From the IMG/VR virus record IMGVR_UViG_3300025000_000053, positions 185,854 to 249,853 of that record: DNA of 64,000 nucleotides; one strand, 5' to 3'. The first letter of the stretch is position 1, and each line of letters begins with the position of its first letter. Shown here one piece after another: positions 6,091 to 62,000 of the stretch. A program made the translations under genes and the position numbers. Under the pieces are notes generated by a model that saw nothing but the letters and a program-made list of their open reading frames with translations, ran no database searches and was not told the origin of the DNA.

Positions 6091-6756
6091 TTGATAATGA
6101 AAAAAAAGTTAAATGAATATTTAATAAAATATGGATTGATACCAAAAAATTTTAATGAAAGATTTTTATATCTTATTAAAGAATTAAAGTTATCAATAGA
6201 TGATATAAATGATATAAAAAAGAAGATACGAAAGATTATTAATGCTAAATGGGAGACAATAGATTTAGTATTTTATTTTTATCCAAAAGCTACACCAAGG
6301 GCACGTTATACAAGCTTTACTAAAACATTTTATGTTAAAGACGCATTTAATTATAGTATTTTATTTAAAGAATTTGTAGAGCAATCTGAAGATTTAGAAA
6401 AATTAATAACAACCCCTTGTAAATTTTATTGTGATCTATTTATACCAATGCCTTCTCAAATGAGTAAGAAAGAAAAAATATTATCTGAATTAAAATTATT
6501 ATATGCTTTACCAAGACCTGATTGGGATAATGCTGGTAAGACATATTCCGATATGGTTCAAAAGCATTTAATAATAGAAGATTGTCTTATAATTGATGGG
6601 AGAGTTAGAAAATTTTATTCAATTAAACCGAGGATAGAAATGAGAATAGAATATATGGAAAAGTATGATTGTTTATTTAATAAGAAAAGAGTAGAAAAAT
6701 GGAAAGTTTATAAGGATAATGAAGATAAAATAATACAAAAAGATAATATATGCTAA
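6091..6756 (+). CDS. rusA: RusA-like Holliday junction resolvase
   Basis: PKATPRAR..RPDWDNAGKTYSDMV..EDCLI..RKFYSIKPRIE matches the RusA acidic motif pattern. Likely start is the ATG at 6097. Confidence 0.75.
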   Translation: MIMKKKLNEYLIKYGLIPKNFNERFLYLIKELKLSIDDINDIKKKIRKIINAKWETIDLVFYFYPKATPRARYTSFTKTFYVKDAFNYSILFKEFVEQSEDLEKLITTPCKFYCDLFIPMPSQMSKKEKILSELKLLYALPRPDWDNAGKTYSDMVQKHLIIEDCLIIDGRVRKFYSIKPRIEMRIEYMEKYDCLFNKKRVEKWKVYKDNEDKIIQKDNIC

Positions 6757-15511: not shown

Positions 15512-16573
15512 ATGGCTATTTTTAATAGAGTAGGAAGAGGAATTACCATACCTTCATATAGTGGGTATGATTGTTTGGTTAATGGGGATTTGTTAGCAAT
15601 TCAAGAAGGTTATGAAGACCAATTGGCAATCATTGAGTCCATTCATGAAATGGATATAGAAGAAATTAATATGGAAAGTGATGTTAAAACTTTACGGGAA
15701 TCCGGTGCTGATGAAGTTAAAATTCAAACTCGTATTAATGAATTTGAATCTGTGGTTGAAAGTGCCATGGGTGGAGTCTGGGAAAACATTAAAGCGTTCT
15801 TCAGCAAAATGTGGGGTAAATTACAGCAGTTTTTTGCTTCTGTTATTCGTTTCTTTGACGGGTTGTTTAAAAGTGGTAAAGATTTTGCCACTAAATATGA
15901 GAAAGAACTTAGAAGGCTTAGTTTATCCGGTTATAAGCATAAAATGTTCAACTATAGTGAATTGGATGGTAACAATCATGTATCCAACGGTATCACTGTA
16001 GCAATGGAAATTGTAAATCAAACTGGAGCTTTAAAGAATTTCTCTTCTGACACTGAGGCTAAAAAATGTTTGGAAGATATGGAAGAAAATAAAGAAGAAA
16101 CCATTAATAAAGTTCGTGGAGCTTTTGTTGGCGGTGGTTCTAAAGATAGTGATGATTTTAAAAAAGGTCTATTCTCACACTTTAGGAGCGGTGCTAAAGA
16201 TAGTGAAGATATTGAAGAGCAATCCGTTAATATTGGAACCATTATTAATGCTTTAATAAGTGATAAATATGCTAAAATGGCAAAAGATTCTGAATCAGCC
16301 GCTGAGAAATCATTTACCACTATTATTAAAACTGTTAATGATAGGGAAAAAGAGTTTGGTAAATCTGTCGATGACAAGAATAAATCTGACGATAAGAGGA
16401 AACTTGCTTCTGTTCAAATTTCTATTATGCAAAAATATTCATCTTTGTTCAGTGAAGCCAAGACCATTGCCCTTGAATATTTTAGTGCATGGAAACAAGC
16501 TATTACTGAACGTGAGTCTGTATATAAGCAAGTATGTGTAAGTGCGTTTAGATATAAGGAAGAAAAAAAATAA
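15512..16573 (+). CDS. Internal head protein paralog 1
   Basis: Acidic propeptide ending VVE|S, then amphipathic GVWENIKAFFSKMWGKL. Late motif at 15466; C-ending codons suggest high expression. Confidence 0.6.
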   Translation: MAIFNRVGRGITIPSYSGYDCLVNGDLLAIQEGYEDQLAIIESIHEMDIEEINMESDVKTLRESGADEVKIQTRINEFESVVESAMGGVWENIKAFFSKMWGKLQQFFASVIRFFDGLFKSGKDFATKYEKELRRLSLSGYKHKMFNYSELDGNNHVSNGITVAMEIVNQTGALKNFSSDTEAKKCLEDMEENKEETINKVRGAFVGGGSKDSDDFKKGLFSHFRSGAKDSEDIEEQSVNIGTIINALISDKYAKMAKDSESAAEKSFTTIIKTVNDREKEFGKSVDDKNKSDDKRKLASVQISIMQKYSSLFSEAKTIALEYFSAWKQAITERESVYKQVCVSAFRYKEEKK

Positions 16574-16621
16574 TTGAATAATAAGAATATAAGTTAAAAA
16601 ATCAAAGGGGGATACATTCAA

Positions 16622-17707
16622 ATGGTTATTTTTGGACATAAGAGAACTAATGATGTAAATGTCGATTTTGATATTTCAAAATATGACCACATCCAACCTA
16701 CTACTGAAGCATTGGAACAAATCATAACAGAATCAGCTAAAGATTCTTATAAAATCCGTGCAAGTATATATATTTCGGATGTACTGATGGAGCAAGCTGT
16801 ACTGACTGAATCAGCTGATCCTCAAGTTCTTCTTGAGGTATTTGGTAAAGGTTTCTTTACCAAAATAAAAGACATGTTCGTAAGAATGTGGAATGCTATA
16901 AAAGCTTTCTTTGAAAAAATGAAAAGACAACTTATTTTGTTTTTCTCTTCCGGTAAAACTTTTGTAGAAAAGTTTGAAAATGAATTACGCAGTAAGAATG
17001 CAAAAGATTATAAGTACAAATCATTTAAATATACTCCGAGTAAAGGTGATAGTTATGGTAGTAAAGTACTTGATGCAATTAATTCAACTGAAAATGAATA
17101 TGAAAATAAACTTAGTAGTTTAGATGTAAGAGACGTTTCTAAACACAAGAGTGCAATGGATTCTAAAAAAGATAATATGAAGGATTCATATGATACCGGT
17201 GAGGAAAAAGAAGGTATATTTAAAAGTTTAAATGTTGATTCTATTTCTGAATTACAGGAAGAATCATATAAAGAGTACAGGAATGGTTCAAAAGAAAAAG
17301 AAGAATTTAAAGATTTTGAAAACAACAGTAAAGAAGACATGATTAAATTCATTAAAGACAAGGATAAAAATATAACTGACCTTGATAGATATCAGAAAGA
17401 TTTGGATTCTCATTTCAGTAAAGTAATTAAGGCTATTGAAGCCGCCGGAAGTAAGTATAAGAATGAGGAATTATCTAAGGTATCACCTTATGTTTCTCAT
17501 AGCGTTGAAATGTTGAGATTCTGTATGTCGATTCGTTCAGCATTAGTTAAGATGCATATCGATTATATAAAAGATGCAGCCAGTGATTTCGAATCTATTT
17601 TAAAAGGTTTTTTAAGATTTAAAGTAGTTAAAGAAAGTTTTGAAGGTAATTATGATGATGATAAAGGTATTACCAATATCTTTGAAGCAGCAATGAAATT
17701 AGTTTAA
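16622..17707 (+). CDS. Internal head protein paralog 2
   Basis: IITES, VLTES and VLLEV motifs, then GFFTKIKDMFVRMWNAIKAFF. Confidence 0.6.
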   Translation: MVIFGHKRTNDVNVDFDISKYDHIQPTTEALEQIITESAKDSYKIRASIYISDVLMEQAVLTESADPQVLLEVFGKGFFTKIKDMFVRMWNAIKAFFEKMKRQLILFFSSGKTFVEKFENELRSKNAKDYKYKSFKYTPSKGDSYGSKVLDAINSTENEYENKLSSLDVRDVSKHKSAMDSKKDNMKDSYDTGEEKEGIFKSLNVDSISELQEESYKEYRNGSKEKEEFKDFENNSKEDMIKFIKDKDKNITDLDRYQKDLDSHFSKVIKAIEAAGSKYKNEELSKVSPYVSHSVEMLRFCMSIRSALVKMHIDYIKDAASDFESILKGFLRFKVVKESFEGNYDDDKGITNIFEAAMKLV

Positions 17708-17713
17708 TATATT

Positions 17714-17757
17714 AATACATTAGATGAATAGTAAATAAACTATTCATCTAATGTATT
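17714..17757. terminator. Long-stem intrinsic terminator
   Basis: aatacattagatgaatagt-aaataa-actattcatctaatgtatt. Confidence 0.7.
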
Positions 17758-17815
17758 TTATATTTTCTTTGAAAACAAATAAATAAGAAAAAAGAAAAGG
17801 AGTTGACTTTTATTT

Positions 17816-18895
17816 ATGAATTTAAAGAATATTTTCAATAAGAATAATTCTAATAATAAATCAATAAAAACCTTATTAACAACTGATGATATTGATTTTG
17901 ATACAAGTCAATCTTGTCTAGAATACTTTATATTACTAGAAGAAGATTATTTTAATATTAATAAGGAACATTTACAATCAGCACATATCGCTAATAAGGA
18001 TAAAAATATGGAAATAATACGAGAAGGTTTTAATGATTTTATTAATTCGGTTATTTCATTTTTTAAAAATCTTTTGGATAAATTCAAAGAATTTATGAAA
18101 AGAATATTTATGATAATATATGCTTATCTTGGTGATTTCGAAAAGTTCTTAGATAAGTATAAAGAACAGTTAAGAGGTTTAGACCCTAAATTTAATGTTA
18201 AAGGATTTAAATATTCTTTTAAATCAAATATACCTAATTTGGATATTATTAATAATATTATTAACTCATATAATAGTGAATTAAATGATATTGATAATAT
18301 GACAAAAGATAAAATTATAGAACAAAGAGAAAAATTTATGGCAACTGCTAATCTAAATAAAATTAGAGCTAATATTATTAGTGTATCAGGTGAAGTAAGT
18401 TCAGAGGATTATTTAAAAGATGTTAAAAAAATATTTAGAGATGGTAATGAAGAAAAAATAGATATAGAAGTAAATAAATCATTCTTAACAACAGTTATAG
18501 CAGATTACCCATTTCTAAAGAAAAATTATTCAGATGCTATTAAAGAAAGAGATGATATAATTGCAGTTATAGAAAAAATTAAATCATTCTTTGAAAAAAA
18601 TGCATCAGTTTATTATAAAGGTAAGGATAAAACTATTGGTACTAAATTATTAAATAGAAGTGGTAATAAAATTCAAACTGGAGATAATGTTGAAAAAAAT
18701 TATAGTGAAAGTAAAATTAATTTAATTAATACATTCTTTAGTTTTAAATTTGCACAATCAAAAGAAATTGGTAGTATGTGTACCATAGCATGTATTGAAA
18801 AGGTTAATGCACTAAAAGAATGCTTATCCTTTTATAGAGAAATTATTAAAAGATGTGCTTTTAAAGGACCTAAAAGTTCAACTGAAGTTAATTAA
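17816..18895 (+). CDS. Internal head protein paralog 3
   Basis: IIRE|G, then FNDFINSVISFFKNLLDKFKEF. Late motif at 17774. Confidence 0.55.
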   Translation: MNLKNIFNKNNSNNKSIKTLLTTDDIDFDTSQSCLEYFILLEEDYFNINKEHLQSAHIANKDKNMEIIREGFNDFINSVISFFKNLLDKFKEFMKRIFMIIYAYLGDFEKFLDKYKEQLRGLDPKFNVKGFKYSFKSNIPNLDIINNIINSYNSELNDIDNMTKDKIIEQREKFMATANLNKIRANIISVSGEVSSEDYLKDVKKIFRDGNEEKIDIEVNKSFLTTVIADYPFLKKNYSDAIKERDDIIAVIEKIKSFFEKNASVYYKGKDKTIGTKLLNRSGNKIQTGDNVEKNYSESKINLINTFFSFKFAQSKEIGSMCTIACIEKVNALKECLSFYREIIKRCAFKGPKSSTEVN

Positions 18896-18918
18896 AAAAT
18901 AATACGAGGTGAAAAACT

Positions 18919-20007
18919 ATGGACTATTGTTTGGAAACAAGTATATTCCATTTAGAAACTGACAAACAATTCTTTTCTACATTATTGGAAAGAATGGAAC
19001 AAGAATCACAATCTATTAATAAATCAATAGATGATAATTTTATTGTATTAGAGGCTGATACTACAAATAATAATCAAGGGATATGGGAGAAAATTAAAGC
19101 TTTCTTTAAACGTATCTTCGGTGTATTTTCAACTAAAACTAAAACACTTTTTGATTCAAATAAAAAATGGATGGATGAAAATTTTAATAAATTAGATAAA
19201 ATTAATTATGATAAGTTAAAAATAGTCATGTTACCATTTTGGTCAATGACTATTAATGATATTAAAGGTGTTCTTAATACAATTCAAGGAATAGCTGATA
19301 ATGAATTAAATAATCCTAAAAGATTAGAAAAATATAAAGATGTAGATGAAATGAAGAATACTTTATTTAAGGAATATTTTAATGAAGACAATGATTTAAC
19401 TTTAGGGTTAAAAAATAAATTTAGGAGTAATAATCCTAAAGGTCCTATTAAAACACAAGAATTATCTGGAGGAGAGTTAAAAAATAAGGTTGCTGAATTT
19501 AAAGATTATTGTTACAATTATGGTAAAGATATAACACCTATGATTCAAGCTTTGATTAATAAAGCTGAACAATCTTTAAATCGTATAGAAAGAGTTCTAA
19601 AAGAATCTATAAATTTTTGTTTAGTTGAAAGTGCCTTTTATTCTCAAACTGAACTATTTTATTGTAGTAATTTTGAAGCTGTGTTTGAAGCTGATGAAAC
19701 AAATAAAGATGATAAAAAGAAAGATGAAAAAAAACCTGGTGATGCTTCAACTAAACCAACCGAAGTATCAGTGGTTAATACAGATGATAAGAGTAAAGTT
19801 GATGAACACGAAGAAAATAAGAAATACTCTAATGTGAGTAATTCACAACTTACTATGTATAAAAATATAGCCCAAATTATTCAATTAGCTATAACTTCAG
19901 CAATGACAGTTTTAGAAGAAAGATTTAGTGCTTATTTAAATGCTTTAAAGAAAATTGTTGCTGAAGCTGGTGGAAATATAAATAATAATCCTGATGATAA
20001 AAAATAA
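18919..20007 (+). CDS. Internal head protein paralog 4
   Basis: VLE|A, then GIWEKIKAFFKRIFGVF; internal VLKES, LVES and VFEA motifs. Confidence 0.55.
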   Translation: MDYCLETSIFHLETDKQFFSTLLERMEQESQSINKSIDDNFIVLEADTTNNNQGIWEKIKAFFKRIFGVFSTKTKTLFDSNKKWMDENFNKLDKINYDKLKIVMLPFWSMTINDIKGVLNTIQGIADNELNNPKRLEKYKDVDEMKNTLFKEYFNEDNDLTLGLKNKFRSNNPKGPIKTQELSGGELKNKVAEFKDYCYNYGKDITPMIQALINKAEQSLNRIERVLKESINFCLVESAFYSQTELFYCSNFEAVFEADETNKDDKKKDEKKPGDASTKPTEVSVVNTDDKSKVDEHEENKKYSNVSNSQLTMYKNIAQIIQLAITSAMTVLEERFSAYLNALKKIVAEAGGNINNNPDDKK

Positions 20008-32277: not shown

Positions 32278-32742
32278 TTAAAGTTTACGGACTATACGAA
32301 TTAACTGTTTAATTAATTCACACTGTTCTATATCAAATTTTTTTTGCTCTGAATCTAATTTTTTATCTTTTTTTGTTTCTTCTATTTGTTTATTTATTAT
32401 ATCAATATCAAATTTATTATCTTTGTTGATATAATCTAAATTTACTGCACCGATGAAATGTTTTATAGCTATCTTTAAGTTATATCTGGTTAAAAGACCA
32501 TAAAATAAATGTTTTAACCTATTTCTTTCTTCTTCGTCAACTTCTAGATTGTTATTATTTTCTTCTATAAATCTAATAGCATCTCTAATTGTCATAGTTA
32601 AAAAACTATCTTCTGCATTTACAAAGTCATTAAATGTTTCTACTAAAAACTCATTTTCATCAAAAAAACCATCTATTTGTTTTTCAGCATTTATTAAATC
32701 CTTTTCAAATAATCTTACATTAACATCAATAATATTACTCAT
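32278..32742 (-). CDS. Paralog family member (early)
   Basis: MSNIIDVN..LFYGLLTRYNLKIAIKHFI; early motif at 32773. Confidence 0.6.
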   Translation of the reverse strand: MSNIIDVNVRLFEKDLINAEKQIDGFFDENEFLVETFNDFVNAEDSFLTMTIRDAIRFIEENNNNLEVDEEERNRLKHLFYGLLTRYNLKIAIKHFIGAVNLDYINKDNKFDIDIINKQIEETKKDKKLDSEQKKFDIEQCELIKQLIRIVRKL

Positions 32743-32831
32743 AAAATCACCCTCCTAAAATTTATTATATTAATAATATATATTTATAATAATATTAAAG
32801 AATGGATATGAATCATATCCATTCTTTATAT

Positions 32832-35800
32832 TCATTTTTTAATATTTAGACAAAATAATATATATGAATTTAAATCTAAACCATAATCGATTTCATTAGG
32901 TACAGCACTCCATACTAATAATGGATATTTTTTATTCGATTCTATTTTAGAATGTATACTCTCAATATATTGTTTCAGATGTATTAAAGAATTAAAAGGA
33001 CCATGAATTCCTAATTGTTCACCCCAAGAAGTTTCAATCCAATAAATCTTTTCATTTTTAATATAATAACATAAAGTATGATTAAAACCACCAGTATTTT
33101 CTTTTTCATTATATTCAATAAAGAATAAACAATTAGCTTTATATATCTTATTATTATTAAATAAATTACGAATAAAAATTGCTTGTTCATGTGATGAGCC
33201 ATTTTGAGATTCAATAAGTTCATCATCATTTTTTAATATAGTAAAGTCAGAATTCTTAATATTATTTCTCATAAAATTATATACATCTTCATCACCATTA
33301 AAATTAGGTAAATCAGTTAGATATAATTCAGTAACAATATTACTTTCATATTGCTTTATTATTGTTAATGTATTTTTATCAACTGCATCTTTATTATAAT
33401 TCTCTAATTTACCCCTAGTTACAAAATGAGTTTTTTTATGTTTAGCAAAGTCATACGGTTTATATAAACTAGGATGTTTATCAATCATACCATTATTAGA
33501 AGCCTTCAATATTTCAGCTACAAATTGACTACAAAAATATTCATTTTGTCTATCAGTTTCTTTACCAATAGAAATATTAAATAATCCAATAAAACTAAAT
33601 TTTAATTTGTCTTTTTTCTTTTTAAAATCTTCTAATCTATTTATCATTAATTCTTTTTGTTCTTTAGTAACAAATAATACATAGAGTGAATAAATTGTAT
33701 CTTTAGTAACATCTTTAAGTAAACCATCTTTTATATCTTCATTAATAAATGTCATATTGGAATCTTTAAATTTTCTACCAAAACTATACATATCATTCAT
33801 ACTACTATCAAAAGAGATACTTACATGACTATATACATCACCAGTAACAAATTTAATTACTTTAGCCATATTAGTACTAGTGAAAGTTAATAGAATAAAT
33901 ACTGGATATAAATTATTATTATCGTAAGATTCCTTAATAATTTCCCCTATTCTTGCCTTATAATTAATAGTTAATTCTTCACCTTTATTGATATTTTTTA
34001 TACTATAAAGATGATATTTACCATTATCATTAACTATTTTTAAATTAGGAGTATCTGAATGATTAAAATAATTATCAAAATTATTAATATCATCTTTTTT
34101 TATTGAAGTTTCACCTATTATATTATTCATATTAATATCTTTTTTAACAAATGAACCTTTAGCTAATTTACTAGTTATTATAAAAGATTCCTTAACAAAA
34201 TCTCTTTCACCTTCAAAATCAAATTGTTTATAATCTATAGTTAGTTCTTCACCTTTTTTAATTTTATTTTTAGATTTATAAAAATAAACTTTCTTTCCAT
34301 TTCTAATAGTTTGAACTAATACTAAATTAGGATTATTTGAATGATTAACAAATTGACCCGCTTTAGTTCGTTTATAATCTTTATCCGGATTATCAGTATC
34401 ATTAACTTTCTTTATAGCTAATAATTTAGTATTAGAATCAATATTTTTATTTGCAAATATACCTTTACCTGATATTTTTGAATCTTTAACATTATAGTAT
34501 GTTTCATTTATATGAATTAATTTAACACCTGTTGTATAATTATGATTTATTTTAATACCATTTTTATTTATATAGTTCATAAATTCAATAGTAGTTAAAT
34601 TATATTTATCAATTTTATATTCATATATACTAAATTTAAAAGACTCACCTTCATCTTCAAACATATTTTTCAATATAAAGTTAAATATATCTTTTAAAGA
34701 ATTTGATTCATATATCCCTTGAATTTTTTTATATGATGATTCAAAATAATAAAATTTATTATTATTTATATAAACTAAAAAAGTATGTGTTGAAGAATTT
34801 TTATTTTTTAATTCAATATAATAAGTTTTAAATTTAAAATTGAATTTTTTATTAAATATATTTCTTTCAAATTCAGTATAATCCCAACATACACCAACCT
34901 TATATTTATAAAAATCCTTTGGAGAAATAGTTTTGTATAAATTAAAAAATTCATCACCTGATAAATTATCAGCTAATATTTTTTTATCTTTAGTTAATAT
35001 ACCATATTTAAAATCATTAAGGATTTTATTTAATTCTAAAGGATTATTTATTTTAGAGATTTCATCTATATATGATTCCTTTAAAACATCTTCTATTCCA
35101 GCTTCTTTTTCCATTTTAACCAACCTAGTATAATAATCAGGGATTTCATCTAAATGGTCTTTAGCTATCATTCTAGCTTTATCTAAATTTTTAGTATGTT
35201 CCTGTTCAATTTCTATACCAATTTTTAATTGTTCAGAATCATAATCAGAATCTGGTCTTATATCATAACTAAGGTCAATAGCTTTTTCATCTTTATTTTC
35301 TTCTATAAAAGATTCTTTAATAAATTCATCAAGAGATTTAATAAACCTTATATGAGTTTTATTAACCATATCACTTTTTTGTTCTTTAAATCCATATTTT
35401 TTAGCTAATTTGATAGATATATTATTAGTCTTTTTTATATTTAGAACAATTGATGTTATATCTCTTTTAGATCGATGGCAGAATTGAATACCTTCATTCA
35501 TTAAAGCATGAGAAATACCTTTTCCACGAAATTCTTCTTTAATAAATATATTAAAGAAAGCATACCCTCTTTTAACCTTTACTTCAATAAATCCAGCATT
35601 TTTATTACCAACTTTATAAATATATCTAAAAGCTACTTTATTATAAAATTCCCTTGGTCCTAATTTTTCATTATTATCATTATCTCCTAATATTCTTAAT
35701 GCACGATGATATTCAGCTTCTATTATAATATCAACATTATTATAACTTTCAGATATTAAATACTCAATTTCTTTATTTTTTAAAAAATTTATCCACTCAT

Positions 35801-37379
35801 CTTCAACTTGTTCAATTTTTAATCCAAATATATTAAAGAAATATTTCTTCATTGTATTTAAAGAATTCATTTTTGGTAAACTATCAATAAATTCTTTTAT
35901 TTTTTTTATTAAAATTAGATTTAACTGTCCTTGACCAAGAAGATATGTTATAAATGAACCAGCTATAGAATATGAAACAATAGTTTGTAATTTACTAAAT
36001 TCATTATTATCATAAATAATATTTTCGAGTTTACTAAATCCTCGTTCCATAATTAATTTAGCATTATCGTGAATGGAATATTTTCCAAACCACCCTATAT
36101 CATTTTTATATTTTTCATCTAAAAATCTCGGCCATGAATAATACATAGCTATTCCCTCAGTCCAAAACATTCCAGAAATTTTAAACCCTTTCCAAATATT
36201 TTCTATTCCTGATATATTAAACATAGTTACAATATGTGCAACTTCATGAGTATCAGATGAATGAATACTTTGTACTACAAGTTCATGGGGAAATGCTCTA
36301 CCCTTACCTTTCATTCCAGTAAGTTGAATATAATTATGTTCTGGTAATTTGTAATATGTTATTTTTTTCCCAATAGGAAAATTCCAATTTGATGCCACTA
36401 TAGACATAAAGTTTTCTAATCGTTTAATAGCTTTTTTAATTTCATAAAAGTTTTCATCTTTTGAATATTTATATATAAAATGTTTTGATTCTTCAGTATC
36501 CCATTCGAATATTGGGTGAATGATTATATCTTTTTGTTTATACAAACTTTTTTCAGTTAATACTTCCGTATTATTATTAATATCATTAAAAGATTCCATT
36601 AAAACAAATATGGGTCTGTTATCTTCACCATTAGATTCAATATATCTATCTTTAGCTTGTTTTAAAAATTCAAATATAGAATCATAATTCTTATTAGTAA
36701 CTTTTATATAGCTAAAAGTTGTTTGACTCATTAATACCTTATCCTTTAATCTTTCTTTAACTTTATCTACTGCTTGAATTTTACCATGTTTATTTTCATT
36801 ATCCCCACCATCTTTAACCTCTATTTCTAATCCTAAAGAAGCTATAAATGCATCTGGTATATAAAATTTTTCTTCACCTTCATATTCATAATAATAAACA
36901 TGAGGTGATGGTGTCATTACATCGTCTGAATCAAATTGTAAAAATATATCTAAGAATTTTAATAAATCTAATTCATATGAACCAGTATATGTTTTTTTAG
37001 CTCCATCTGACCATATATACTCACCTGAAATTTTTCTATTAGCTAACATTTTCTTTTGTTGTTCAGGGTTACTTAATAAATGAATTTTACCATATTTACC
37101 AATCATTCTTTTTTTAAATATTTCCCTATATATATCTTTACATTTAGGATTTTCACAAAATCTTTTATACTTATTAGTTACATTACACCATTTAGTAGGT
37201 TTTTTACAAATAATACATCTACCTTTATCTTTACCTGTTTTTAAAAAATAAAAATATTGTGATGACGTAAAATTTTTAGGTATCAGTCCATTATGTTCAT
37301 CTTCAAGATGTTGATATAAATCTTCAATATGATTAAATTTATCATTACATATAGTACATTTAATCAAATTAAAACACAC
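32832..37379 (-). CDS. Multi-enzyme polyprotein: Zn-finger + TnsA/gp4-like nuclease, gluzincin, GNAT, DUF5661-like, transglutaminase-like, SET, partial SET, permuted papain (YiiX-like), second transglutaminase-like
   Basis: Motifs YIPD..IEVKD; HEVAH..TEG; FRGKG; EHTK..IAKDHL.E.PDYY; GVCWDY/THTF/YFES; NHS..PN/GEELTIDY twice; YSHVSI..YFCSQF; GSSHEQ/NHTL/YWIETSW. Late motif at 37396. Confidence 0.75.
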   Translation of the reverse strand: MCFNLIKCTICNDKFNHIEDLYQHLEDEHNGLIPKNFTSSQYFYFLKTGKDKGRCIICKKPTKWCNVTNKYKRFCENPKCKDIYREIFKKRMIGKYGKIHLLSNPEQQKKMLANRKISGEYIWSDGAKKTYTGSYELDLLKFLDIFLQFDSDDVMTPSPHVYYYEYEGEEKFYIPDAFIASLGLEIEVKDGGDNENKHGKIQAVDKVKERLKDKVLMSQTTFSYIKVTNKNYDSIFEFLKQAKDRYIESNGEDNRPIFVLMESFNDINNNTEVLTEKSLYKQKDIIIHPIFEWDTEESKHFIYKYSKDENFYEIKKAIKRLENFMSIVASNWNFPIGKKITYYKLPEHNYIQLTGMKGKGRAFPHELVVQSIHSSDTHEVAHIVTMFNISGIENIWKGFKISGMFWTEGIAMYYSWPRFLDEKYKNDIGWFGKYSIHDNAKLIMERGFSKLENIIYDNNEFSKLQTIVSYSIAGSFITYLLGQGQLNLILIKKIKEFIDSLPKMNSLNTMKKYFFNIFGLKIEQVEDEWINFLKNKEIEYLISESYNNVDIIIEAEYHRALRILGDNDNNEKLGPREFYNKVAFRYIYKVGNKNAGFIEVKVKRGYAFFNIFIKEEFRGKGISHALMNEGIQFCHRSKRDITSIVLNIKKTNNISIKLAKKYGFKEQKSDMVNKTHIRFIKSLDEFIKESFIEENKDEKAIDLSYDIRPDSDYDSEQLKIGIEIEQEHTKNLDKARMIAKDHLDEIPDYYTRLVKMEKEAGIEDVLKESYIDEISKINNPLELNKILNDFKYGILTKDKKILADNLSGDEFFNLYKTISPKDFYKYKVGVCWDYTEFERNIFNKKFNFKFKTYYIELKNKNSSTHTFLVYINNNKFYYFESSYKKIQGIYESNSLKDIFNFILKNMFEDEGESFKFSIYEYKIDKYNLTTIEFMNYINKNGIKINHNYTTGVKLIHINETYYNVKDSKISGKGIFANKNIDSNTKLLAIKKVNDTDNPDKDYKRTKAGQFVNHSNNPNLVLVQTIRNGKKVYFYKSKNKIKKGEELTIDYKQFDFEGERDFVKESFIITSKLAKGSFVKKDINMNNIIGETSIKKDDINNFDNYFNHSDTPNLKIVNDNGKYHLYSIKNINKGEELTINYKARIGEIIKESYDNNNLYPVFILLTFTSTNMAKVIKFVTGDVYSHVSISFDSSMNDMYSFGRKFKDSNMTFINEDIKDGLLKDVTKDTIYSLYVLFVTKEQKELMINRLEDFKKKKDKLKFSFIGLFNISIGKETDRQNEYFCSQFVAEILKASNNGMIDKHPSLYKPYDFAKHKKTHFVTRGKLENYNKDAVDKNTLTIIKQYESNIVTELYLTDLPNFNGDEDVYNFMRNNIKNSDFTILKNDDELIESQNGSSHEQAIFIRNLFNNNKIYKANCLFFIEYNEKENTGGFNHTLCYYIKNEKIYWIETSWGEQLGIHGPFNSLIHLKQYIESIHSKIESNKKYPLLVWSAVPNEIDYGLDLNSYILFCLNIKK

Positions 37380-37458
37380 CCTCTCATTATTCTATTATTT
37401 AAATGTTAATTATATATAAAAGATATAACTAAATAAAAAAATCAAGTAGATATAATAT

Positions 37459-37860
37459 CTACTTGATTTTTAATTTTTTCTCCTTTATGAATTCCATTAA
37501 CATAATTTGAATAGTTTTAGTTACATAACCTATTATATATTCCTTGCTATAATAATATTCTAAATTTGTCATAAAAGGTTTATTAAATGACATTATGACC
37601 GCATGAGTTAATTGATTTAAATCTTTTTCAAAATCTTTAATCATTGTCATATTTCTTAATTCATACTCTAGTTTATATTTTTCTAAGAATGTTCGTTTTA
37701 TAGTAGTATCTATGATATTCATTAAAGTATCTAAATCTTGAACATTGATATGAAGGTCATGCTTAATTTTATATAAAAAAATACTACTAGCAATAATCAA
37801 AGATGTTGTTAGAAAAAGTATAAGTGTACTTACTATGATTATAATATTGTTAATCTCCAT
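37459..37860 (-). CDS. Membrane-anchored late protein
   Basis: N-terminal TM helix; late motif at 37888-37899. Confidence 0.55.
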   Translation of the reverse strand: MEINNIIIIVSTLILFLTTSLIIASSIFLYKIKHDLHINVQDLDTLMNIIDTTIKRTFLEKYKLEYELRNMTMIKDFEKDLNQLTHAVIMSFNKPFMTNLEYYYSKEYIIGYVTKTIQIMLMEFIKEKKLKIK

Positions 37861-40173: not shown

Positions 40174-40554
40174 ATGTTGAATGATATTATTTCTGTATTC
40201 AATCAGCTTACTCGTAATGAGTTGGCTGATTGTTCATTATTTGAAAATATTATTAATAGACATTATGAAAAATTTAAATATTTTTACTTTATTATAGATA
40301 ATATTAGCTTAAAGAATATAATAGACATTAAATGTCAGGAAGAATCAACACGATTAAATATTTCCATCTCATTTAAAACAAAAAAAGAAAGAGATTTATT
40401 TTTTAATATATTTAATAATAAGATTAATAATAATTGTAATTTTAAATATAAAGATTATTTTATTTTCAAAATTATAAAAGATACTAAATCTATTAATGTA
40501 ACAATAGAAAATAATGATATTATAGTAGAAGAGGTGTTGTATGGATGCAAATAG
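40174..40554 (+). CDS. Hypothetical protein
   Basis: Overlaps the start of the RNAP gene. Confidence 0.5.
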   Translation: MLNDIISVFNQLTRNELADCSLFENIINRHYEKFKYFYFIIDNISLKNIIDIKCQEESTRLNISISFKTKKERDLFFNIFNNKINNNCNFKYKDYFIFKIIKDTKSINVTIENNDIIVEEVLYGCK

Positions 40555-42803
40555 AACTCTTTGATACTAAGAAATTTATCGAAGTGAATAACTTAAGAGA
40601 GGTAACAAATTTAATATTATTTGAAAAAGGAAATATCCCAACTGTTGATGGTTTATTATCAACAGATATATTTGGGGTATCATCTAGAGAAAGAAAAGAA
40701 ACATATGCTTATATTGATTTACACGGACATTTCTTACATCCATTTATATTTAAGACATTAAAACGAATGAATAGAAAATTTGAATCTGCTATATATGGGA
40801 ATATAAATTTTATAATTAAAGATGGTGAATTAGTTGAAGATGAAAACGGAGAAAGTGGAATAGACTTTTTATATAAAAATTGGGAAAAATTTAATTTTGA
40901 ACGAAATAATAGTATGATGCGTAATGAAAGAATTTCTGTTTTAGAATCATATAAAAAAAATGTTTTATTTACTAAGTATTGGATTGTTATGCCAGCTTTT
41001 TTTAGAGATGTGAATTTACAATTTGCAGCTGAAGGAAGAGTATCTCACCATGAGATAAATGATAAATATTCTAAGTTAATTAGGTTTGCTTCTATAATTA
41101 TTAATAACAATTTTGATTTTGTTCTAAATACAACTAAAGCAAAAATTCAAGAAACTCTTGTTGAAATCTACGATTTACTTAAAGGTAAGATAGAAAAGAA
41201 ACAAGGGTTGATTCGTAAATCATTATTAGGTAAATCAATAGATTTTGGCGTTAGGAGTGTAAATTTACAATGCACGTGATTCTTTAATTGTCGGGGAAGC
41301 CCTTTAAATCTCTTACTACCAAACTATAATAGCAATATTATAGTGGCGAAGGGTAATGCCTTAGGTATGGTAACAAGGTAAGAAATTAGGTAATCCGCAG
41401 CTAAGATTCTAATATATTAATATTATTAGAATAAAGTTCAACGACTATCTGATGACGCTACTTTTAGTAGAGTAGGAGTAGACTCACAAGTCAATTAATG
41501 GTGAGTTGAAATGGGAAACCATCAAAAAGATGAAGATATAGTCTAGTATCCTAGTGAAAACTAGGGAAGTTCATTAGAGAACTGCATAGTCTGACGAACT
41601 ATGTGAATACAACGAATTTCTGCACCAATATTCAAAGCGAATAAATCAGAAGATATGAAAGTCGATTTTTATAATTGTGGTATACCATTATCACAATGCT
41701 GTTCATTATGCACACCATATATGATAACTTGGGTGAAAAGATTCTTTCAGAGGGAATTAGAAAGACTTTATATGAAATATCCGGTTAAATTAAAAACAGA
41801 AGAGATTATTTATGTTAAATTAAAATCACCTGAGTTATTTTTTAATGATGAATATATTGAAAAGCAAATTAATAAATTTATTTCTAGTTATGGTGATAGA
41901 TTTGAAAAAATCAAATTACCTATAGATGATCCTAAATATGAAAAAAATATTTATTTAAGTTTTATTGGAAGAGAATTTATTAAAGGTGTTCCAGAAACAG
42001 AATCACCTTTAATACAAAGACCTGCTACATGGTGTGATATTTTATATCAAGCAGCAGTTGAAATTACTTCTGATAAACATGTTTATGTAACACGATATCC
42101 TGTTTTAGATTATTTCGGTACTTTTCCTAATAAAATTCATGTTTTATCAACTCATGAAACTATTCCAATGTTTGTTGGTTCTAGGGTATATGAGCACTAC
42201 CCTAAAATAGATATTAAAATGCCTAAAGAAAAAGTTTCTATTACCTTTGCTGATACAGTAACAATGTCAAACCTGTATTTAACAGGTCTTGGTGGAGACT
42301 ACGATGGTTCTTTAAATGCCCACTTATATGGTGACATATATGTGAATCTTCTTTAATTGTCGGGGAGGCTCTTAGAGCTTTTTATTATATAATAAAAAGA
42401 TTGGGTAATCCGCAGCTAAGATTCTAATATATTAATAATATATTAGAATAAAGTTCAACGACTATCCCTAGGTACTGAAATGTACAACAGGAGTAGGGCT
42501 CAAGTGAGTGGGTGAAAATCCCTTAAATCGAAATAGGAAGCACCTCCTATAAGGTGATGATATAGTCTAGTATCCTAGTGAAAGCTAGGGAAGTTCATAA
42601 GAGAACTGCATAGAATAACGACCTATGTGAATATATCGGATCAAGTATCTTTAAAGGTTTTATTTTCACAAGAAGCTAATCTTGAGGCAGATAGAATTAT
42701 GAAATCAAAAGGTCATATTCTTAATATCTATGGACAAAATATGAGAAAGACAACAAATGAAGGTGCTCATACTTTATTTATGTTAACAAAGTTTAATAAA
42801 TAA
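40545..42803 (+). CDS. rpoC: RNA polymerase beta' N-terminal subunit (probably virion RNAP), spliced from exons 40545-41260, 41615-42308, 42639-42803 (524 aa)
   Basis: GLIRKSLLGKSIDFGVRS-V-ISAP and GGDYDG-DQV are restored only after removing two group I introns. Frames checked; stop codon at 42801-42803. Confidence 0.85.
41261..41614 (+). mobile_element. Group I intron 1 (354 nt, ORF-less)
   Basis: P aattgtcgggga, Q aatccgcagc, R gttcaacgacta, S aagatatagtct. P1 gugu|a pairs with ugcac, giving a U.G pair at the splice site. Terminal G at 41614. Confidence 0.9.
42309..42638 (+). mobile_element. Group I intron 2 (330 nt, ORF-less), inside the catalytic DYDG/D motif
   Basis: P/Q/R/S elements present. 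The exon ends in U (ggt), the intron ends in G, and splicing restores DYDGD. Confidence 0.9.
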
Positions 42804-56069: not shown

Positions 56070-58351
56070 TTATATTTTTAGAATATTACTATAGTAATCA
56101 TCTTCAGTTGTCTTAATAATTCCAATACCCAAACTATCTAATACACCATGGAACGTAGATAAATTATTATTTATAATTGTACTATAATCAATAAAAGGAA
56201 TTATCCAATTTGGTATCTTAGGTATATTTCTAGGCAAAGCTATAACTTTAACTCCTTTCTCTCTTATTTTCTTATCACTATTATTATATATATTTTCAAT
56301 TATCCTTTCATATATTTCAGGCTCAGATTGTTTTATTTTTTCAATAGAGTTTTCATCCATATTAACCTTAATAATATCAATGTGTTCAGGTAGTTCTATT
56401 GAATTATCAGGATAAGCATAATTCCATGCTAAAACAGCACGGACACCCATTTCTCTTAATGGATCTTTATATGCTTCTAATTCTTTTACTGATTTAGGAA
56501 TTAGAAAATCTTTTTGACCTGATTCTAGAGATATTCTAATTATATTTTCTAATTTTTCTAATTCTTTTAAAACATTAGATATATTAATTTCTTCAGTTGA
56601 TAATAAATGTTCTTTAATAAGATTTTTAAAGAATTTTTCTGTTGCTTCTCTTGTTGATGACTTAACAAAATCTAACGTAGTGTTCACATAGGTCGTTAAT
56701 CTATGCAGTTCTCTTATGAACTTCCCTAAGTTTCCCTAGGATACCAGACTATATCTTCATCCTTATTATATAACTAATAAGGAGCCTCCCATTTCGATTT
56801 AAGGGATTTTCACCCACTCACTTGAGCCCTACTCCTATTGATCATTTCAGATCCAAAGGGATAGTCGTTGAACCTTTCTCTTATATTAGAGACTTGGCTG
56901 CTGATTACCCAATATTTTAGTTTATTACCTTTATCTTAAGGTACTAAAATCTATAAGGATTTTCCAGCAGTTAAAGAGGTTTTCTTTATATATTACTATA
57001 TAAAGGAGCAATATTTATTACCCTTAATATCAACTTTTTCAGGATATATTTCATCTCCTTCTCTTAATCTAACACTACTTATATATCTTTTCTTTTTCTG
57101 TGTTAAAATAAGTCTAGTGAATAAAAATTCATTTTTCATATTTATTTTATGTCTATATCTTTTAGGTATATTTACATCTTTAGTATATTTCTTCAATGTA
57201 TTAGTAACCATATTAGTTATTATATAAGCCAATAAGTTGATAGAAATAAATTTTAATTCAGTTTTATCCTTATTTATTAATTTATCATTAACATCGATAA
57301 TATTATATTTAATAAATTTAACCCATTTATCAATAGTCATAATAGTTGAATCTGTATCTGAACCAACTACAGTTTTTCTTTCATCATATTTTAATCTACG
57401 AATCCTATTATATGGAGAAAAATTAAAGAAAACAAATTCTTTATATAGTTTCCATAATAGTTCTAAATCATCTTTTACGTTATTAGGTATCTTATTAGGA
57501 TTTTTAAATGTATCAATATTTTCTATAATATATGATAATAAGTTTCTTATTTTTCTTAATTTTGAAAATTCAAAAATGTTATTCTTATAGTAAATTCTAT
57601 TAATATCTTTTTGACTTAAAGATAATAAATAATTTAAAATAAAAGAATTATACTCTTTTTTATAATTAAAAAATCTTTTCTTTAAATATTTCATTAATTG
57701 TTTTGAACTAATATTTTCTAAAAAATTATCATTTAAATTTCTTTTTTCCTTAATTACATTAGTTAAAAAAAACACACATTCTTCAAGATTATTAAATGGA
57801 GCATTATTTTCTAAAAAAGTTTCAAAAGCCATTTCAGCTGTAGCTATTAATGATTGGCCGGAGTTTGTAATAGAACTGGCGGTGTATAAATTATAAAAAT
57901 TAGATGTTGGGGCTCCGTTGGACCCGAAGAACGAGTTTGCGTTGGTTTTCTCAGAACCTTGTAACCTATCAAATGTCCCATATTCATAATCATCTTTTGA
58001 ATATTTTTTTAATTGATTTTTATACTCTTTTCTTAACGACATAAAGTTTTCTAGCATAACAGCGGCTGGATTCAATGATTCATCTTGATTTTTAAAAAAT
58101 ACTCCGAATCCAGCAACTATAGGTTTAGTTTTTTTAACCCAATCATATACTGATATTAAATCTACATTAATAGATTTATGAATATAGTTATTATGAATTA
58201 TAGCTTTAGGGTTAATTAAGTTTTTATCTATAATATCATCTAAAACTTTTGATATATCTTTATTTGTTAGTTCAGGATACATTCTTTTAAATATCTCTAT
58301 ATTACTTTCTTTCCAATCTTTTATAAATAAACTTTTAATTTTTTTAGATAT
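56070..58351 (-). CDS. polB: Family B DNA polymerase, C-terminal polypeptide of a split enzyme; exons 58351(or 58282)-57020 and 56675-56070
   Basis: EKTNANSFFG (motif B), GSDTDS (motif C), KKRY, and DIKG-LDFVKSST restored after splicing. Motif A (DxxSLYP) is absent. Confidence 0.85.
56676..57019 (-). mobile_element. Group I intron 3 (344 nt, ORF-less) in the DNA polymerase gene
   Basis: On the minus strand: P aactgctggaaa, Q aatcagcagc, R gttcaacgacta, S aagatatagtct. The exon ends ggt and the intron ends in G; frame restored. Confidence 0.9.
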
Positions 58352-59064: not shown

Positions 59065-62000
59065 ATGTTATTGGAAAATAATATAAAAGAAATTATTGGT
59101 TTATTAAGTAACAAAGTATTTATTATTTCAGAAATAATGGAAACTAGAAAAACTTTTAATGAGAATCTAGAGACAATTTATGATTATTTAAAACAAGGTT
59201 TTGAAATTAAAGAATTAAGAACATGTCCAACTTACTTTAGATTTAAAGAAGATGGTTATATACACACTTTACAATTAAGACATTTTCTTACCAACTTGAT
59301 GTTTTGGGAACCATTAATGAGATTTGATTGTTCAGATAAGTTAGATGAAACTTATATTGTTGATTGTACTAAAATGTCATCTAAATTAATTAAAAATTAT
59401 ATTGATAATAAAATTGTTATACCTTATAGAAGAATAATCGAAAATAAGAAAATGAATAAAGTTATTCATGATATGATTTATAATCTATCAAGAATATCAA
59501 CAGATTTTAATATTATATTAGGATTGTCTATTAATGTTGAGACATTTATTGATGTTGCAAAAAGAAATCCAAGATTTAATGAGATTATTAGGACTCAATT
59601 AAATGAAGATATGCAACCAACTGAGATTGAGGAATATTTAGATAAATTGATGCATGAACAAATAGAAATCTTAAAAAATGATGATAAAGATAATTTATTA
59701 AAACCAATACTTAAATCAGGTGCTGGTATTAAAAGTAAACAATTGTCAGAATTCTCAATATCTGGCGGGTTAAAAATTAGCCCCGTACATAGGCGACTAT
59801 GTGCGTAAACCTCTTTAATTGCTGGGACTCTCTTAAAATATTCTTCTACCAGAATATTAATAAAAGTTGGTGTTGATATTGAAGCTAGTTAATATCGATT
59901 ATGATAAAAAGAAGAAGTTATATATAGTTACCTTTTTTAAAAATAAGGGTGGTTATAAAATAAGAACTAAAAGATTTACTTATTCTGAAGATAGTCATGG
60001 ACCTTTCGCTAGGATTCTTGCTTTACATACAATGAAGACAGGTGAGAGACTTTATCATTGGTTTGTGACTGACGGTATATATACATCTATTTTTATATAT
60101 AATAAAAAATATGGTTTTAGACGTATGTTAATCGATAATGAATTTATTGACATCGTCAAAAATCATAGGATTAATATAATTAAAAATAAAACTGGTCAGA
60201 ATATATTTTATGCGACAATAAAAATAAACGGTAAGAATGTCCCTGTACATCGTCTTATTATGGGTCTAGGAGAATATAGAAATGATCCTGTAGATCATGT
60301 ATTTCATGATTCTTTAGATAATATGAAATTAAATCTACGTGTCTGTACTCCTAGTATTAATAATAGGAATTCAAGATTACGATGTGACAGTAAAACTGGT
60401 ATACAGGGAGTTTGTTTTAATAAAAATAAATGCTCGTATACCGCAGAAGTTAGAGATTTTAATGGTAGAAAAATTAGAAAAAGCTTTCCCATAAAACTTT
60501 ATGGTGAAAATAAAGCCATTGAATTAGCAAAACAATGGCGTGAAATTATGGTAGAAGAATATTATGAGAGACAATCAGCAGCGAAGCCTGATTATTAGTC
60601 AGGAACGTTCAACGACTATCCAAAGCATGTTCATTATTGATATAAAATATAATGAACATAAGCGAGTAGAGTAGGACTAGAAGCTAATGCTAGTTCCAAA
60701 CGGGAGGCATCTCACTGAGATGATGATATAGTCTAGTATCCTAAAGTGATTTAGGGAAGTTCATAAGAGAACTGTATAGGGGTTGCGTCCTATATGAATG
60801 ATCGTAAAACCAAATATTTCTGGTACTACTATCCCTATACCTATTAATAGTAATTATATCGTAGGTGGATTGAGGAATATAACTAATTATTATATAGATT
60901 CTCTCGGTGGTCGCAAATCATTGATTATGAGTAAGCTTGAGATGGGAAATTCTGGGCATTTCGCACGTACTGTGATGCTATTAGTTTCCAGTATTAATTT
61001 ATCTAAAACAGTCGAATCATGTAATACTGTACATCCAATAAAAATTGAATTAACAACTAAAGACCATTTAATAAGAATGCGGGGTAGATATTATCGAACC
61101 ATGTATTCTAGAAATTATCAATTATTAAAAGGTGATGAATATAATTTAATAGGGGAAACTATTTTTGTTAAATCACCAGTTACTTGTGCTTGTAAAGATG
61201 GGATATGTAAAATGTGTTATGGTGAATTATCATATATAAATAATGATATTTCAATAGGTGTATATGCTGGTACAAAAATCACAGAACCAGTTTCACAAAA
61301 TATTTTATCCTCTAAACATTTATTAACAACTAAATCAGAAAAAATACAATTTAATGAAGAATTCTATAGATTTTTTAATATAAGTGGTAATGAAATAATT
61401 ATTAATCCAAATGATGATTTAGATAATTTAGATGATTATAGTTTACTTATAATTAAAAGTAATATTAAAACAATAGCTGATTATGATGATAATGATATGG
61501 AATTTAATGAATATGTAAATCTATTCCATGTATATAATAAGAAAACTAATGAGATGATAGAAATAAAAGAAAGTAGAGATAAAGATTTATATATCTCTCC
61601 TGAATTAAGAAAATTATTTAAGAAAAAAAGTAAAAAGGAAGTTTATGAAATTGATTTTAAAAATATTGATGATGATAGAATTTTTGTTATAGAAGTAGTT
61701 AATAATGAGTTAACCCGTCCACTATATGATATTATGCGTTTAATTGATAGGGTTGACTATAGAATCATACATTGGAACTGTGTTACAATTGATCAAATGT
61801 GTCAAAAGATGTTAGATTTAATAATAGAGTCTGAAATTAATTCTGACTCTGTTCATGGTGAATTAATTTTAACACCATTATTAAGAGATAAAGATGATAT
61901 ATTAGAAAGACCTAAATTTAATAAGTACTTTAATGGTGATGAAGGATACCAAATTCTAACAGTTAAATCTGCTTTAGAAAAACATCCATCAGTATTAGTT

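Follow-up and report, generated by a model that had tools for sequence, protein, structure and literature searches.

A modular polyprotein gene with repeated glutamate linkers in a relative of the AR9/PBS1 group of jumbo phages

Gene and transcription signals

A stretch of 64,000 nucleotides (the window) from the IMG/VR virus record IMGVR_UViG_3300025000_000053 (positions 185,854 to 249,853) was analysed with respect to one gene, whose product consists of nine segments joined by short linkers that carry a glutamate (Glu) motif. The open reading frame (ORF) of 1515 amino acids (aa) named in a preliminary description, which had been made from the DNA letters without database searches, was present at 32832..37379 on the minus strand with a GTG start. 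One gene caller placed the start four codons downstream at a TTG (37365-37367), resulting in a product of 1511 aa (P0001). The TTG is the probable true start, as it agrees better than the GTG with the GAGAGG ribosome-binding site. Residue numbers of the polyprotein refer to the GTG in the following and in Table 1.

Judged by its predicted signals, the gene is a transcription unit of its own, with a terminator upstream, a promoter motif and a terminator downstream (Table 1). The late promoter motif claimed in the preliminary description was found, and the predicted transcription start (the last A of AACA-N6-TA) is located upstream of both start codons, at a distance of 16 nt from the GTG and 28 nt from the TTG. 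The same motif was present 5-90 nt upstream of 15 of the 55 ORFs of the window, structural and lysis genes included, compared to 5.9+-2.5 expected.

The window is AT-rich, with a GC content of 20-29%. It encodes split multisubunit RNA polymerase subunits, GroEL, a primase, a DNA polymerase, virion structural proteins, an endolysin and a baseplate wedge subunit. These genes show the phage to be related to the AR9/PBS1 group, which belongs to the phiKZ-related jumbo phages. A megablast search of the polyprotein region against cultured phages gave no match. On a second contig of 11.9 kb (IMGVR_UViG_3300025010_000388, L002), gene calling divided the polyprotein gene into products of 464 and 1012 aa. 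A tblastn search gave 100% identity across residues 1-1515 despite the two-piece call, which is probably due to a frameshift or an assembly error.

Table 1. Positions of the modules, linkers, transcription signals and paralogous genes in the window. A slash in a motif follows the Glu residue; strand (.) denotes a feature without strand.
Feature	Residues	Position	Strand	Description
Module 1	1-262	36594..37379	(-)	C2H2-type zinc finger, Cys cluster, PD-(D/E)xK nuclease-like; ends VLME/SF
Linker 1	263-276	36552..36593	(-)	14-residue spacer from VLME/ to VLTE/; low pLDDT
Module 2	277-544	35748..36551	(-)	Gluzincin metallopeptidase, HExxH and downstream Glu; ends LISE/SY
Linker 2	545-554	35718..35747	(-)	Spacer from LISE/ to IIIE/
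Module 3	555-689	35313..35717	(-)	GNAT acetyltransferase, Pfam Acetyltransf_10/1/7, E = 5e-11 to 2e-8; ends FIKE/SF
Module 4	690-768	35076..35312	(-)	DUF5661, Pfam PF18905, 8e-15; ends VLKE/SY
Module 5	769-959	34503..35075	(-)	Transglutaminase/papain-like Cys-His-Glu domain, weak DUF553 match (1e-3); ends HINE/TY
Module 6	960-1064	34188..34502	(-)	SET domain 1, Pfam SET 5.9e-12; ends FVKE/SF
Module 7	1065-1150	33930..34187	(-)	SET domain 2, shorter, Pfam SET 1.1e-10; ends IIKE/SY
Module 8	1151-1351	33327..33929	(-)	Permuted papain-fold, NlpC/P60 superfamily, YiiX/C92-like; ends IVTE/LY
Module 9	1352-1515	32835..33326	(-)	Module 5 paralogue by cross-matches and alignment, nucleophile Cys replaced by Ser
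Late promoter motif		37396..37407	(-)	AACA-N6-TA, AR9-type; consensus from PMC5312081
Two-way hairpin terminator		37437..37471	(.)	16-bp stem, then T run; separates polyprotein gene from upstream 133-aa membrane-protein ORF
Two-way hairpin terminator		32796..32828	(.)	15-bp stem, directly past polyprotein stop codon
Four tandem paralogous genes		15512-20007	(+)	353-362 aa, 18-25% identical

Modules of the polyprotein

At least nine enzyme-like modules had been proposed in the preliminary description. Nine segments were obtained, and seven of them are credible enzymes; the earlier count was slightly too high, because module 4 (DUF5661) has no known function or activity and module 9, without the nucleophile Cys, is probably inactive or changed.

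Module 1 matched phrog_15137 over aa 5-242 (1.4e-62) and reached 26.4 bits against the Pfam family DUF7487, just below the cut-off of 27. In an alignment of six proteins including AR9 g233 and phiR1-37 g237, residues P171, D172, E183 and K185 were invariant; across 28 family members, D172 and K185 remained invariant and P171 and E183 were at least 90% conserved. An AlphaFold2 (AF2) model of the module had a mean predicted local distance difference test (pLDDT) value of 75. The top Foldseek matches of this model (PvuRts1I, AbaSI, I-Bth0305I, a Cas4-like protein, RecE and Vsr) were weak (all E >= 0.13, probability <= 0.44), and the best fold matches were all PD-(D/E)xK nucleases.

In module 2, the residues H102, E103, H106 and E132 were conserved among 29 sequences, and Peptidase_MA_2 was matched by 6 of 29 relatives. 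Stand-alone copies of DUF5661 are present in cyanophages. A literature search on DUF5661 and DUF7487 returned nothing. The module 5 pattern G-x-C-x-D ... H-T ... E-S recurred in 16 related modules, with only G, D, H and E exceeding 80% conservation, and the Cys was replaced by Ser in 5 of 18 aligned sequences. Modules 6 and 7 reached 46.4 and 42.2 bits with Pfam SET (cut-off 22.4), which matched the entire polyprotein in two stretches with 70 bits; the SET motifs NHS and ELTIDY (ELxxxY type) are readable in the sequence.

Module 8 has an invariant His and a nearly invariant Cys-Ser (24 sequences), with the His before the Cys as in the permuted fold. Its Pfam match to Peptidase_C92 was weak (19.5 bits, cut-off 27), and a Foldseek search with its AF2 model gave 3kw0 and 2if6 at a probability of 0.99-1.0 (template modelling score 0.52-0.59). 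The AF2 model of module 9 was too low in confidence for a fold assignment. A sequence search of modules 1, 2, 5 and 8-9 against the PDB gave no usable match.

Glutamate motifs at the module borders

The ten motifs listed in the preliminary description and the coordinates of their Glu codons were exact, and all eight module borders carry a Glu motif. In the loose form in which it had been defined (hydrophobic-x-E), the motif is uninformative. The polyprotein contains 37 copies of [FILVM]xE, and a form with two hydrophobic residues, [FILVMY][FILVMTA]xE, has a frequency of 1-2 per 100 aa in most proteins of the window. The loose motif alone therefore says little, and it was rejected as evidence.

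A stricter pattern gave a different result. The form [FILVM][FILVM]xE[ST][FY] was present six times compared to 0.14 expected, and six or more copies were obtained in 0 of 20000 shuffles. The form [ILV]xE[STL][FY] was present eight times (0.55 expected), exactly at the eight module borders and at 12 times its density in the other 16.6 kaa (thousand amino acids) encoded by the window; it was defined after the sites were known, and its p-value is illustrative only. The junctions are short flexible linkers in which [ILV]-x-Glu precedes Ser/Thr and Phe/Tyr, in some cases with a doubled site, and L, I or V is at the P3 position of all eight borders.

At the six strict sites, differing codons are used (TCT, AGT or TCA for Ser), and nucleotide identity over 18 nt is 67%. 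The differing codons indicate that selection acts on the peptide rather than on the DNA. A DNA-level repeat or recombination junction was rejected for the polyprotein gene on the same grounds.

With the preliminary description, the question had been raised whether the motifs lie inside folded domains. Domain envelopes, homologues, models and indels all placed the border sites in linkers. None of the Pfam or PHROG envelopes crossed a border site. Stand-alone homologues of module 2 (~280 aa) spanned residues 13-263 of this 268-residue module and nothing beyond. The AF2 model of module 1 was confident to approximately residue 256, and pLDDT fell below 50 from model residue 259. Model numbering began at the TTG, so that this residue directly follows Glu262 of the ORF. 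The same low-confidence stretch included the second site, VLTE. In the model of module 8, pLDDT exceeded 90 at residues 5-195 and confidence was lost from residue 196 on, so that the drop precedes the Glu of IVTE by five residues.

Comparison of the module order in homologues, which had been proposed as a check, showed that modules were gained or lost at the motifs, within a few residues, in the two closest relatives (P0002, 76% identity; P0003, 70% identity). In P0002, the GNAT module directly follows DIIME/, and module 7 (SET domain 2) is missing, with the indel at the motif. In one example of module change among close relatives, module 8 was placed after FVKE/SY.

Family of proteins sharing the N-terminal domain

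The N-terminal domain recurs in at least 71 metagenomic proteins (850-2240 aa) with differing cargo, including NUDIX, P-loop NTPases, M23 peptidase, calcineurin-like phosphoesterase, SNF2 helicase, GNAT and DUF362. In ~60 of the 67 aligned homologues, hydrophobic-x-E-[S/N/T/G] follows right after the N-terminal domain, with a second site 10-20 residues on. Comparison of close relatives within four further lineages showed repeated linkers on either side of inserted modules (AAKE/SF ... AVKE/SL; VNE/SYEIIE/E at both ends; IKE/STEYVE/E at both ends; ITE/SVEDNLFDELITE/N).

Homologues of up to 70% identity were used for counting. A hydrophobic residue-x-E preceded 34 of the 42 starts of modules 5, 8 and 9 (background 39%, p = 4e-8), and the stricter form preceded 30 of the 42 (background 20%, p = 1e-12); the sequences counted are not phylogenetically independent of each other. 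A 1571-aa homologue from a different phage of 229 kb (L006) has [ILV][TMQ]E/[SGAL] ahead of each module, where the module starts were marked by eye from the sequence. As read from these alignments, the Glu motif is conserved at the protein level across the family.

The module content of the family bears on which protease might cut the linkers. Self-processing would require that one of the polyprotein's own peptidase-like modules (the gluzincin module 2, the YiiX-type module 8 or the transglutaminase-like module 5) makes the cuts. All three have a peptidase fold with intact catalytic residues, module 8 is the commonest module after the N-terminal domain (32 of 71 members), and a zincin peptidase domain has been proposed to act in this way in polyvalent proteins (Iyer et al., PMC5512222). 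However, 33 of the 71 members have none of the three modules and still retain the repeated linkers, which favours a protease acting in trans over obligatory self-processing. Furthermore, module 2 occurs in this phage only, and NlpC/P60 and M23 modules of virion proteins usually target the cell wall. The combination of Glu at P1 and a hydrophobic residue at P3 characterises gp21-type prohead proteases (PMC9026906), not papain-fold or MA-clan peptidases. Self-processing was therefore considered very improbable.

Orthologues, expression and synteny of the N-terminal domain

Orthologues of module 1 were found as a stand-alone protein of ~235 aa in AR9/PBS1, BpSp, staphylococcal jumbo phages, Listeria phage LPJP1 and Yersinia phage phiR1-37. 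Identity to AR9 g233 was 46% (tblastn 3e-48) and identity to phiR1-37 g237 was 37%. No cargo is attached to the stand-alone proteins, whose C-termini lie ~20 residues short of the first Glu linker. In cultured phages, the domain was observed on its own in the AR9/PBS1 group, staphylococcal S6-like phages, phiR1-37, Listeria LPJP1 and Fusobacterium phages.

The GenBank label of phiR1-37 g237 is 'phage structural protein', and AR9 g233 is annotated as an endonuclease. AR9 g233 is expressed late (0.47, 141 and 1092 units at 5, 20 and 40 min), and the promoter mapped for this gene has the AACA-N6-TA motif (PMC5312081). In AR9, phiR1-37, DC4 and the window, the gene is located back-to-back with a baseplate wedge gene. 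This neighbour is probably conserved in L006 too, where a divergent 140-aa ORF is present at the baseplate-wedge position.

The weak resemblance of the module 1 model to the modification-dependent enzymes PvuRts1I and AbaSI raised the idea that module 1 could be a virion nuclease which tells host from phage DNA. The genomes of AR9 and phiR1-37 are stated to contain uridine (PMC5312081).

Predicted packaging and processing

The gene was tentatively read as encoding a late-expressed, virion-borne modular effector polyprotein of an AR9/PBS1-like jumbo phage that is cut in trans by a Glu-specific prohead protease, a reading to which we give nearly an even chance. We infer packaging, cleavage, the identity of the protease and delivery as follows. 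The polyprotein would be synthesised late in infection, and the constant N-terminal domain would bring it into the prohead. A Glu-specific protease acting in trans, likely the phage's T4 gp21-type prohead protease, would cut the linkers during head maturation and release separate enzymes within the capsid. The freed enzymes would then enter the host together with the DNA and could modify host proteins, nucleic acids or the cell wall.

The T4 protease gp21 follows the rule L/I-X-E, with a hydrophobic P3 and Glu at P1; its substrates include the injected enzyme Alt, which is trimmed at both termini, and core proteins, which are cut at multiple sites (PMC9026906). All eight borders have [ILV]-x-E in low-pLDDT linkers or outside domain envelopes, as expected of a gp21-type motif in an exposed region. 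Both gp21 and the phiKZ-type proteases had been cited as precedents in the preliminary description. The first fits the linkers, whereas the phiKZ/SPN3US rule, with its preference for a small residue at P3 (S/A/G or A), does not; the linkers thus agree with the T4-type rule.

The capsid protein and the protease of the present phage were also sought. A search of IMG/VR with the BpSp capsid protein and with an AR9-group alignment returned AR9-like contigs only. Capsid proteins of the AR9 group have invariant ILGE/GF and ILQE/S-type motifs in their N-terminal ~90 residues. The BpSp genes upstream of the capsid gene included no clear protease, only an 83-aa fragment with a weak match to Peptidase_S77 (E = 7e-4), and the annotation of DC4 includes a gp21-type (Peptidase_S77) protease.

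Possibly, though with somewhat less than an even chance, the Glu linkers are standard prohead-protease junctions in a widespread family of AR9-like jumbo phages, in which any enzyme module with flanking Glu linkers could be added behind a constant virion-targeting nuclease domain, be packaged within one product and be freed in the capsid as a separate effector.

Several observations weigh against cleavage in the head. Besides the border sites, 29 further [FILVM]xE sites are present within the modules, so that cleavage would have to be made specific by the accessibility of the sites or by the P1'/P2' residues. The family statistics on the linkers lack phylogenetic independence, as mentioned above. 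A short N-terminal capsid-targeting peptide of the T4 type was not found; the N-terminus is folded and the first linker site is at residue 262. Neither a prohead protease nor a capsid protein was detected by PHROG and Pfam scans among 40 ORFs of the window, which covers 64 kb of 250 kb, and no counterpart of the four paralogs listed in Table 1 was found in PHROG, Pfam or the phage database. The assignment of the orthologue to the virion depends on one GenBank annotation, and the module 1 orthologue was not listed in the shallow virion proteome of DC4 (15 proteins). The conserved synteny is with a baseplate gene and not with head genes, and a tail location, beyond the reach of the prohead protease, is possible.

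The protein might instead act unpackaged, as a late intracellular protein working in the producing cell, for example on phage or host proteins, either cleaved or not. Late expression does not prove packaging, the DC4 proteome agrees with such a role, and so does the simple endonuclease annotation in AR9. On the other hand, the phiR1-37 orthologue is annotated as a structural protein, the cargo (GNAT, NUDIX, nucleases, helicases and peptidoglycan hydrolases) matches that of injected polyvalent proteins, and the Glu-linker design has no obvious use outside the prohead. A role restricted to the producing cell was considered improbable.

The baseplate neighbour would agree with an uncleaved multidomain virion or ejection protein, in which the modules would stay tethered and the linkers would be structural or recombination junctions. 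Many polyvalent and tail-associated proteins work intact, such as the virion RNA polymerase of N4 (PMC5512222). The peptidoglycan-hydrolase-like modules (YiiX-type and M23) would likewise suit an intact tail-associated or ejection protein, and the repeated linkers could merely mark module shuffling. However, the linkers are conserved in their peptide sequence while the codons differ, and their length is insufficient for homologous recombination. The Glu and the hydrophobic P3 are invariant across very different lineages, and doubled sites 5-14 residues apart are typical of spacers removed by a protease. An uncleaved protein was regarded as rather unlikely, and processing by a head protease was retained as the preferred reading.

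Comparison to known systems

The statement in the preliminary description that no such cassette was known was too strong, as polyvalent proteins (PMC5512222) and T4 Alt with the internal proteins (PMC9026906) precede it. Polyvalent proteins are multi-enzyme proteins of phages and conjugative elements which are thought to be packaged, delivered and processed into units (Iyer, Burroughs, Anand, de Souza, Aravind 2017, PMC5512222); they were defined by two to fifteen functionally disparate domains per polypeptide (PMC5512222). The present phage protein has nine segments, including a nuclease-like domain, a peptidase, a GNAT domain, two SET domains and a papain-fold. As with polyvalent proteins, the gene is located near late or virion genes and the architecture is highly mosaic between relatives. 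GNAT, NUDIX and SNF2-helicase cargo is common to both.

The signature domains of polyvalent proteins (MPTase-PolyVal, ART-PolyVal, LPD, ArdC-N, DdrB-ParB and others) were not found by Pfam searches with the whole protein (E<=1) or with segments (E<=5). Unlike in polyvalent proteins, the constant element is an N-terminal zinc-finger/PD-(D/E)xK domain, and the conserved Glu junctions point to a head protease acting in trans instead of a built-in zincin peptidase; module 2 differs from the polyvalent zincin in being a gluzincin of the Peptidase_MA type. The text of PMC5512222 does not mention phiKZ, jumbo phages, linkers, SET, NlpC or transglutaminase; AR9 was not searched for there. The constant N-terminal domain and the Glu-linker junctions were found neither in PMC5512222 nor in a 2021 jumbo-phage survey, and literature searches for such a jumbo-phage polyprotein found no paper.

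T4 Alt reaches the host by ejection from the head, in which it is packaged and trimmed by gp21, and multiple sites serve to remove spacer peptides (PMC9026906). The linkers share the L/I-X-Glu rule with hydrophobic P3 with Alt and the internal proteins of T4, and have in addition a hydrophobic P4 and Ser-Phe/Tyr at P1'-P2'. Whereas T4 internal proteins are single-function proteins with a targeting peptide of ~10 residues at the N-terminus, the polyprotein has a folded N-terminal domain of 260 residues and eight internal junctions. The giant phages phiKZ and SPN3US have a virion RNA polymerase and many head-internal proteins which are cut after Glu at several sites and ejected (PMC10052503, PMC9026906). 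The motif of their proteases gp175/gp245 has a small P3 (S/A/G-X-E or A-X-E), in contrast to I/L/V in the polyprotein, and the cleavages reported for them take off N-terminal propeptides instead of dividing a chain of enzymes. AR9 g233, phiR1-37 g237 and the staphylococcal 'endonuclease fused to N-terminal Zn finger domain' are orthologous to module 1 (37-46% identity), with the same neighbour and the same late promoter type. The polyprotein family and its Glu-linker design were not found in these papers or in the literature searches, and they were taken as a variant within the idea of polyvalent proteins and T4 Alt.

If the linkers are cut by the head protease, giant phages could load many enzymes into the capsid from one gene and swap cargo quickly at standard junctions. 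The linkers would then provide a sequence rule for the prediction of packaged effectors in uncultured jumbo phages, as well as a natural design for putting foreign proteins into phage heads. Candidate activities for host takeover or anti-defence would include lysine methylation by SET domains, acetylation by GNAT, NUDIX, and papain-fold or transglutaminase-like enzymes. The idea of polyvalent proteins would be widened to processing in trans, and a double-stranded DNA phage would use a polyprotein strategy otherwise typical of RNA viruses for a fast-evolving injected toolkit.

Paralogs and other features of the window

The four tandem paralogs were described earlier as head proteins whose propeptides end in the same motif. 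Several xxE sites are present in the first ~90 residues of the four proteins, whose head location is putative. Paralog 2 (16622-17707 (+)) has VVKE/SF 22 residues before its C-terminus, which matches the linker pattern. The related contig L018 has the same set of four paralogs (73-84% identity), and these orthologues are too close to show selective conservation of sites. A 154-aa ORF just downstream of the polyprotein gene (32278-32742 (-)) contains LVE/TF at residue 35, which also matches the linker pattern. By these motifs, the 154-aa ORF and paralog 2 may be further protease substrates.

Two group I introns (Rfam RF00028, 57 and 76 bits) were found at 41199-41566 and 42299-42590 (+). They split the RNA polymerase beta-subunit gene into exons at ~40545-41279 and 41655-42356, and a further exon is probably located downstream. 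The adjacent ORFs 56070-56687 and 56996-58282 (-) both matched the DNA polymerase profile phrog_2927 (profile positions 510-707 and 352-505, respectively), which indicates that the DNA polymerase gene is split or interrupted. In phages, an AP2 DNA-binding domain usually marks a gene of the homing-endonuclease type; such a domain (Pfam, 39 bits) was found in the 243-aa ORF 59867-60598 (+). A gene for a RusA-type Holliday junction resolvase (6091-6756 (+)) is located amid virion structural genes.

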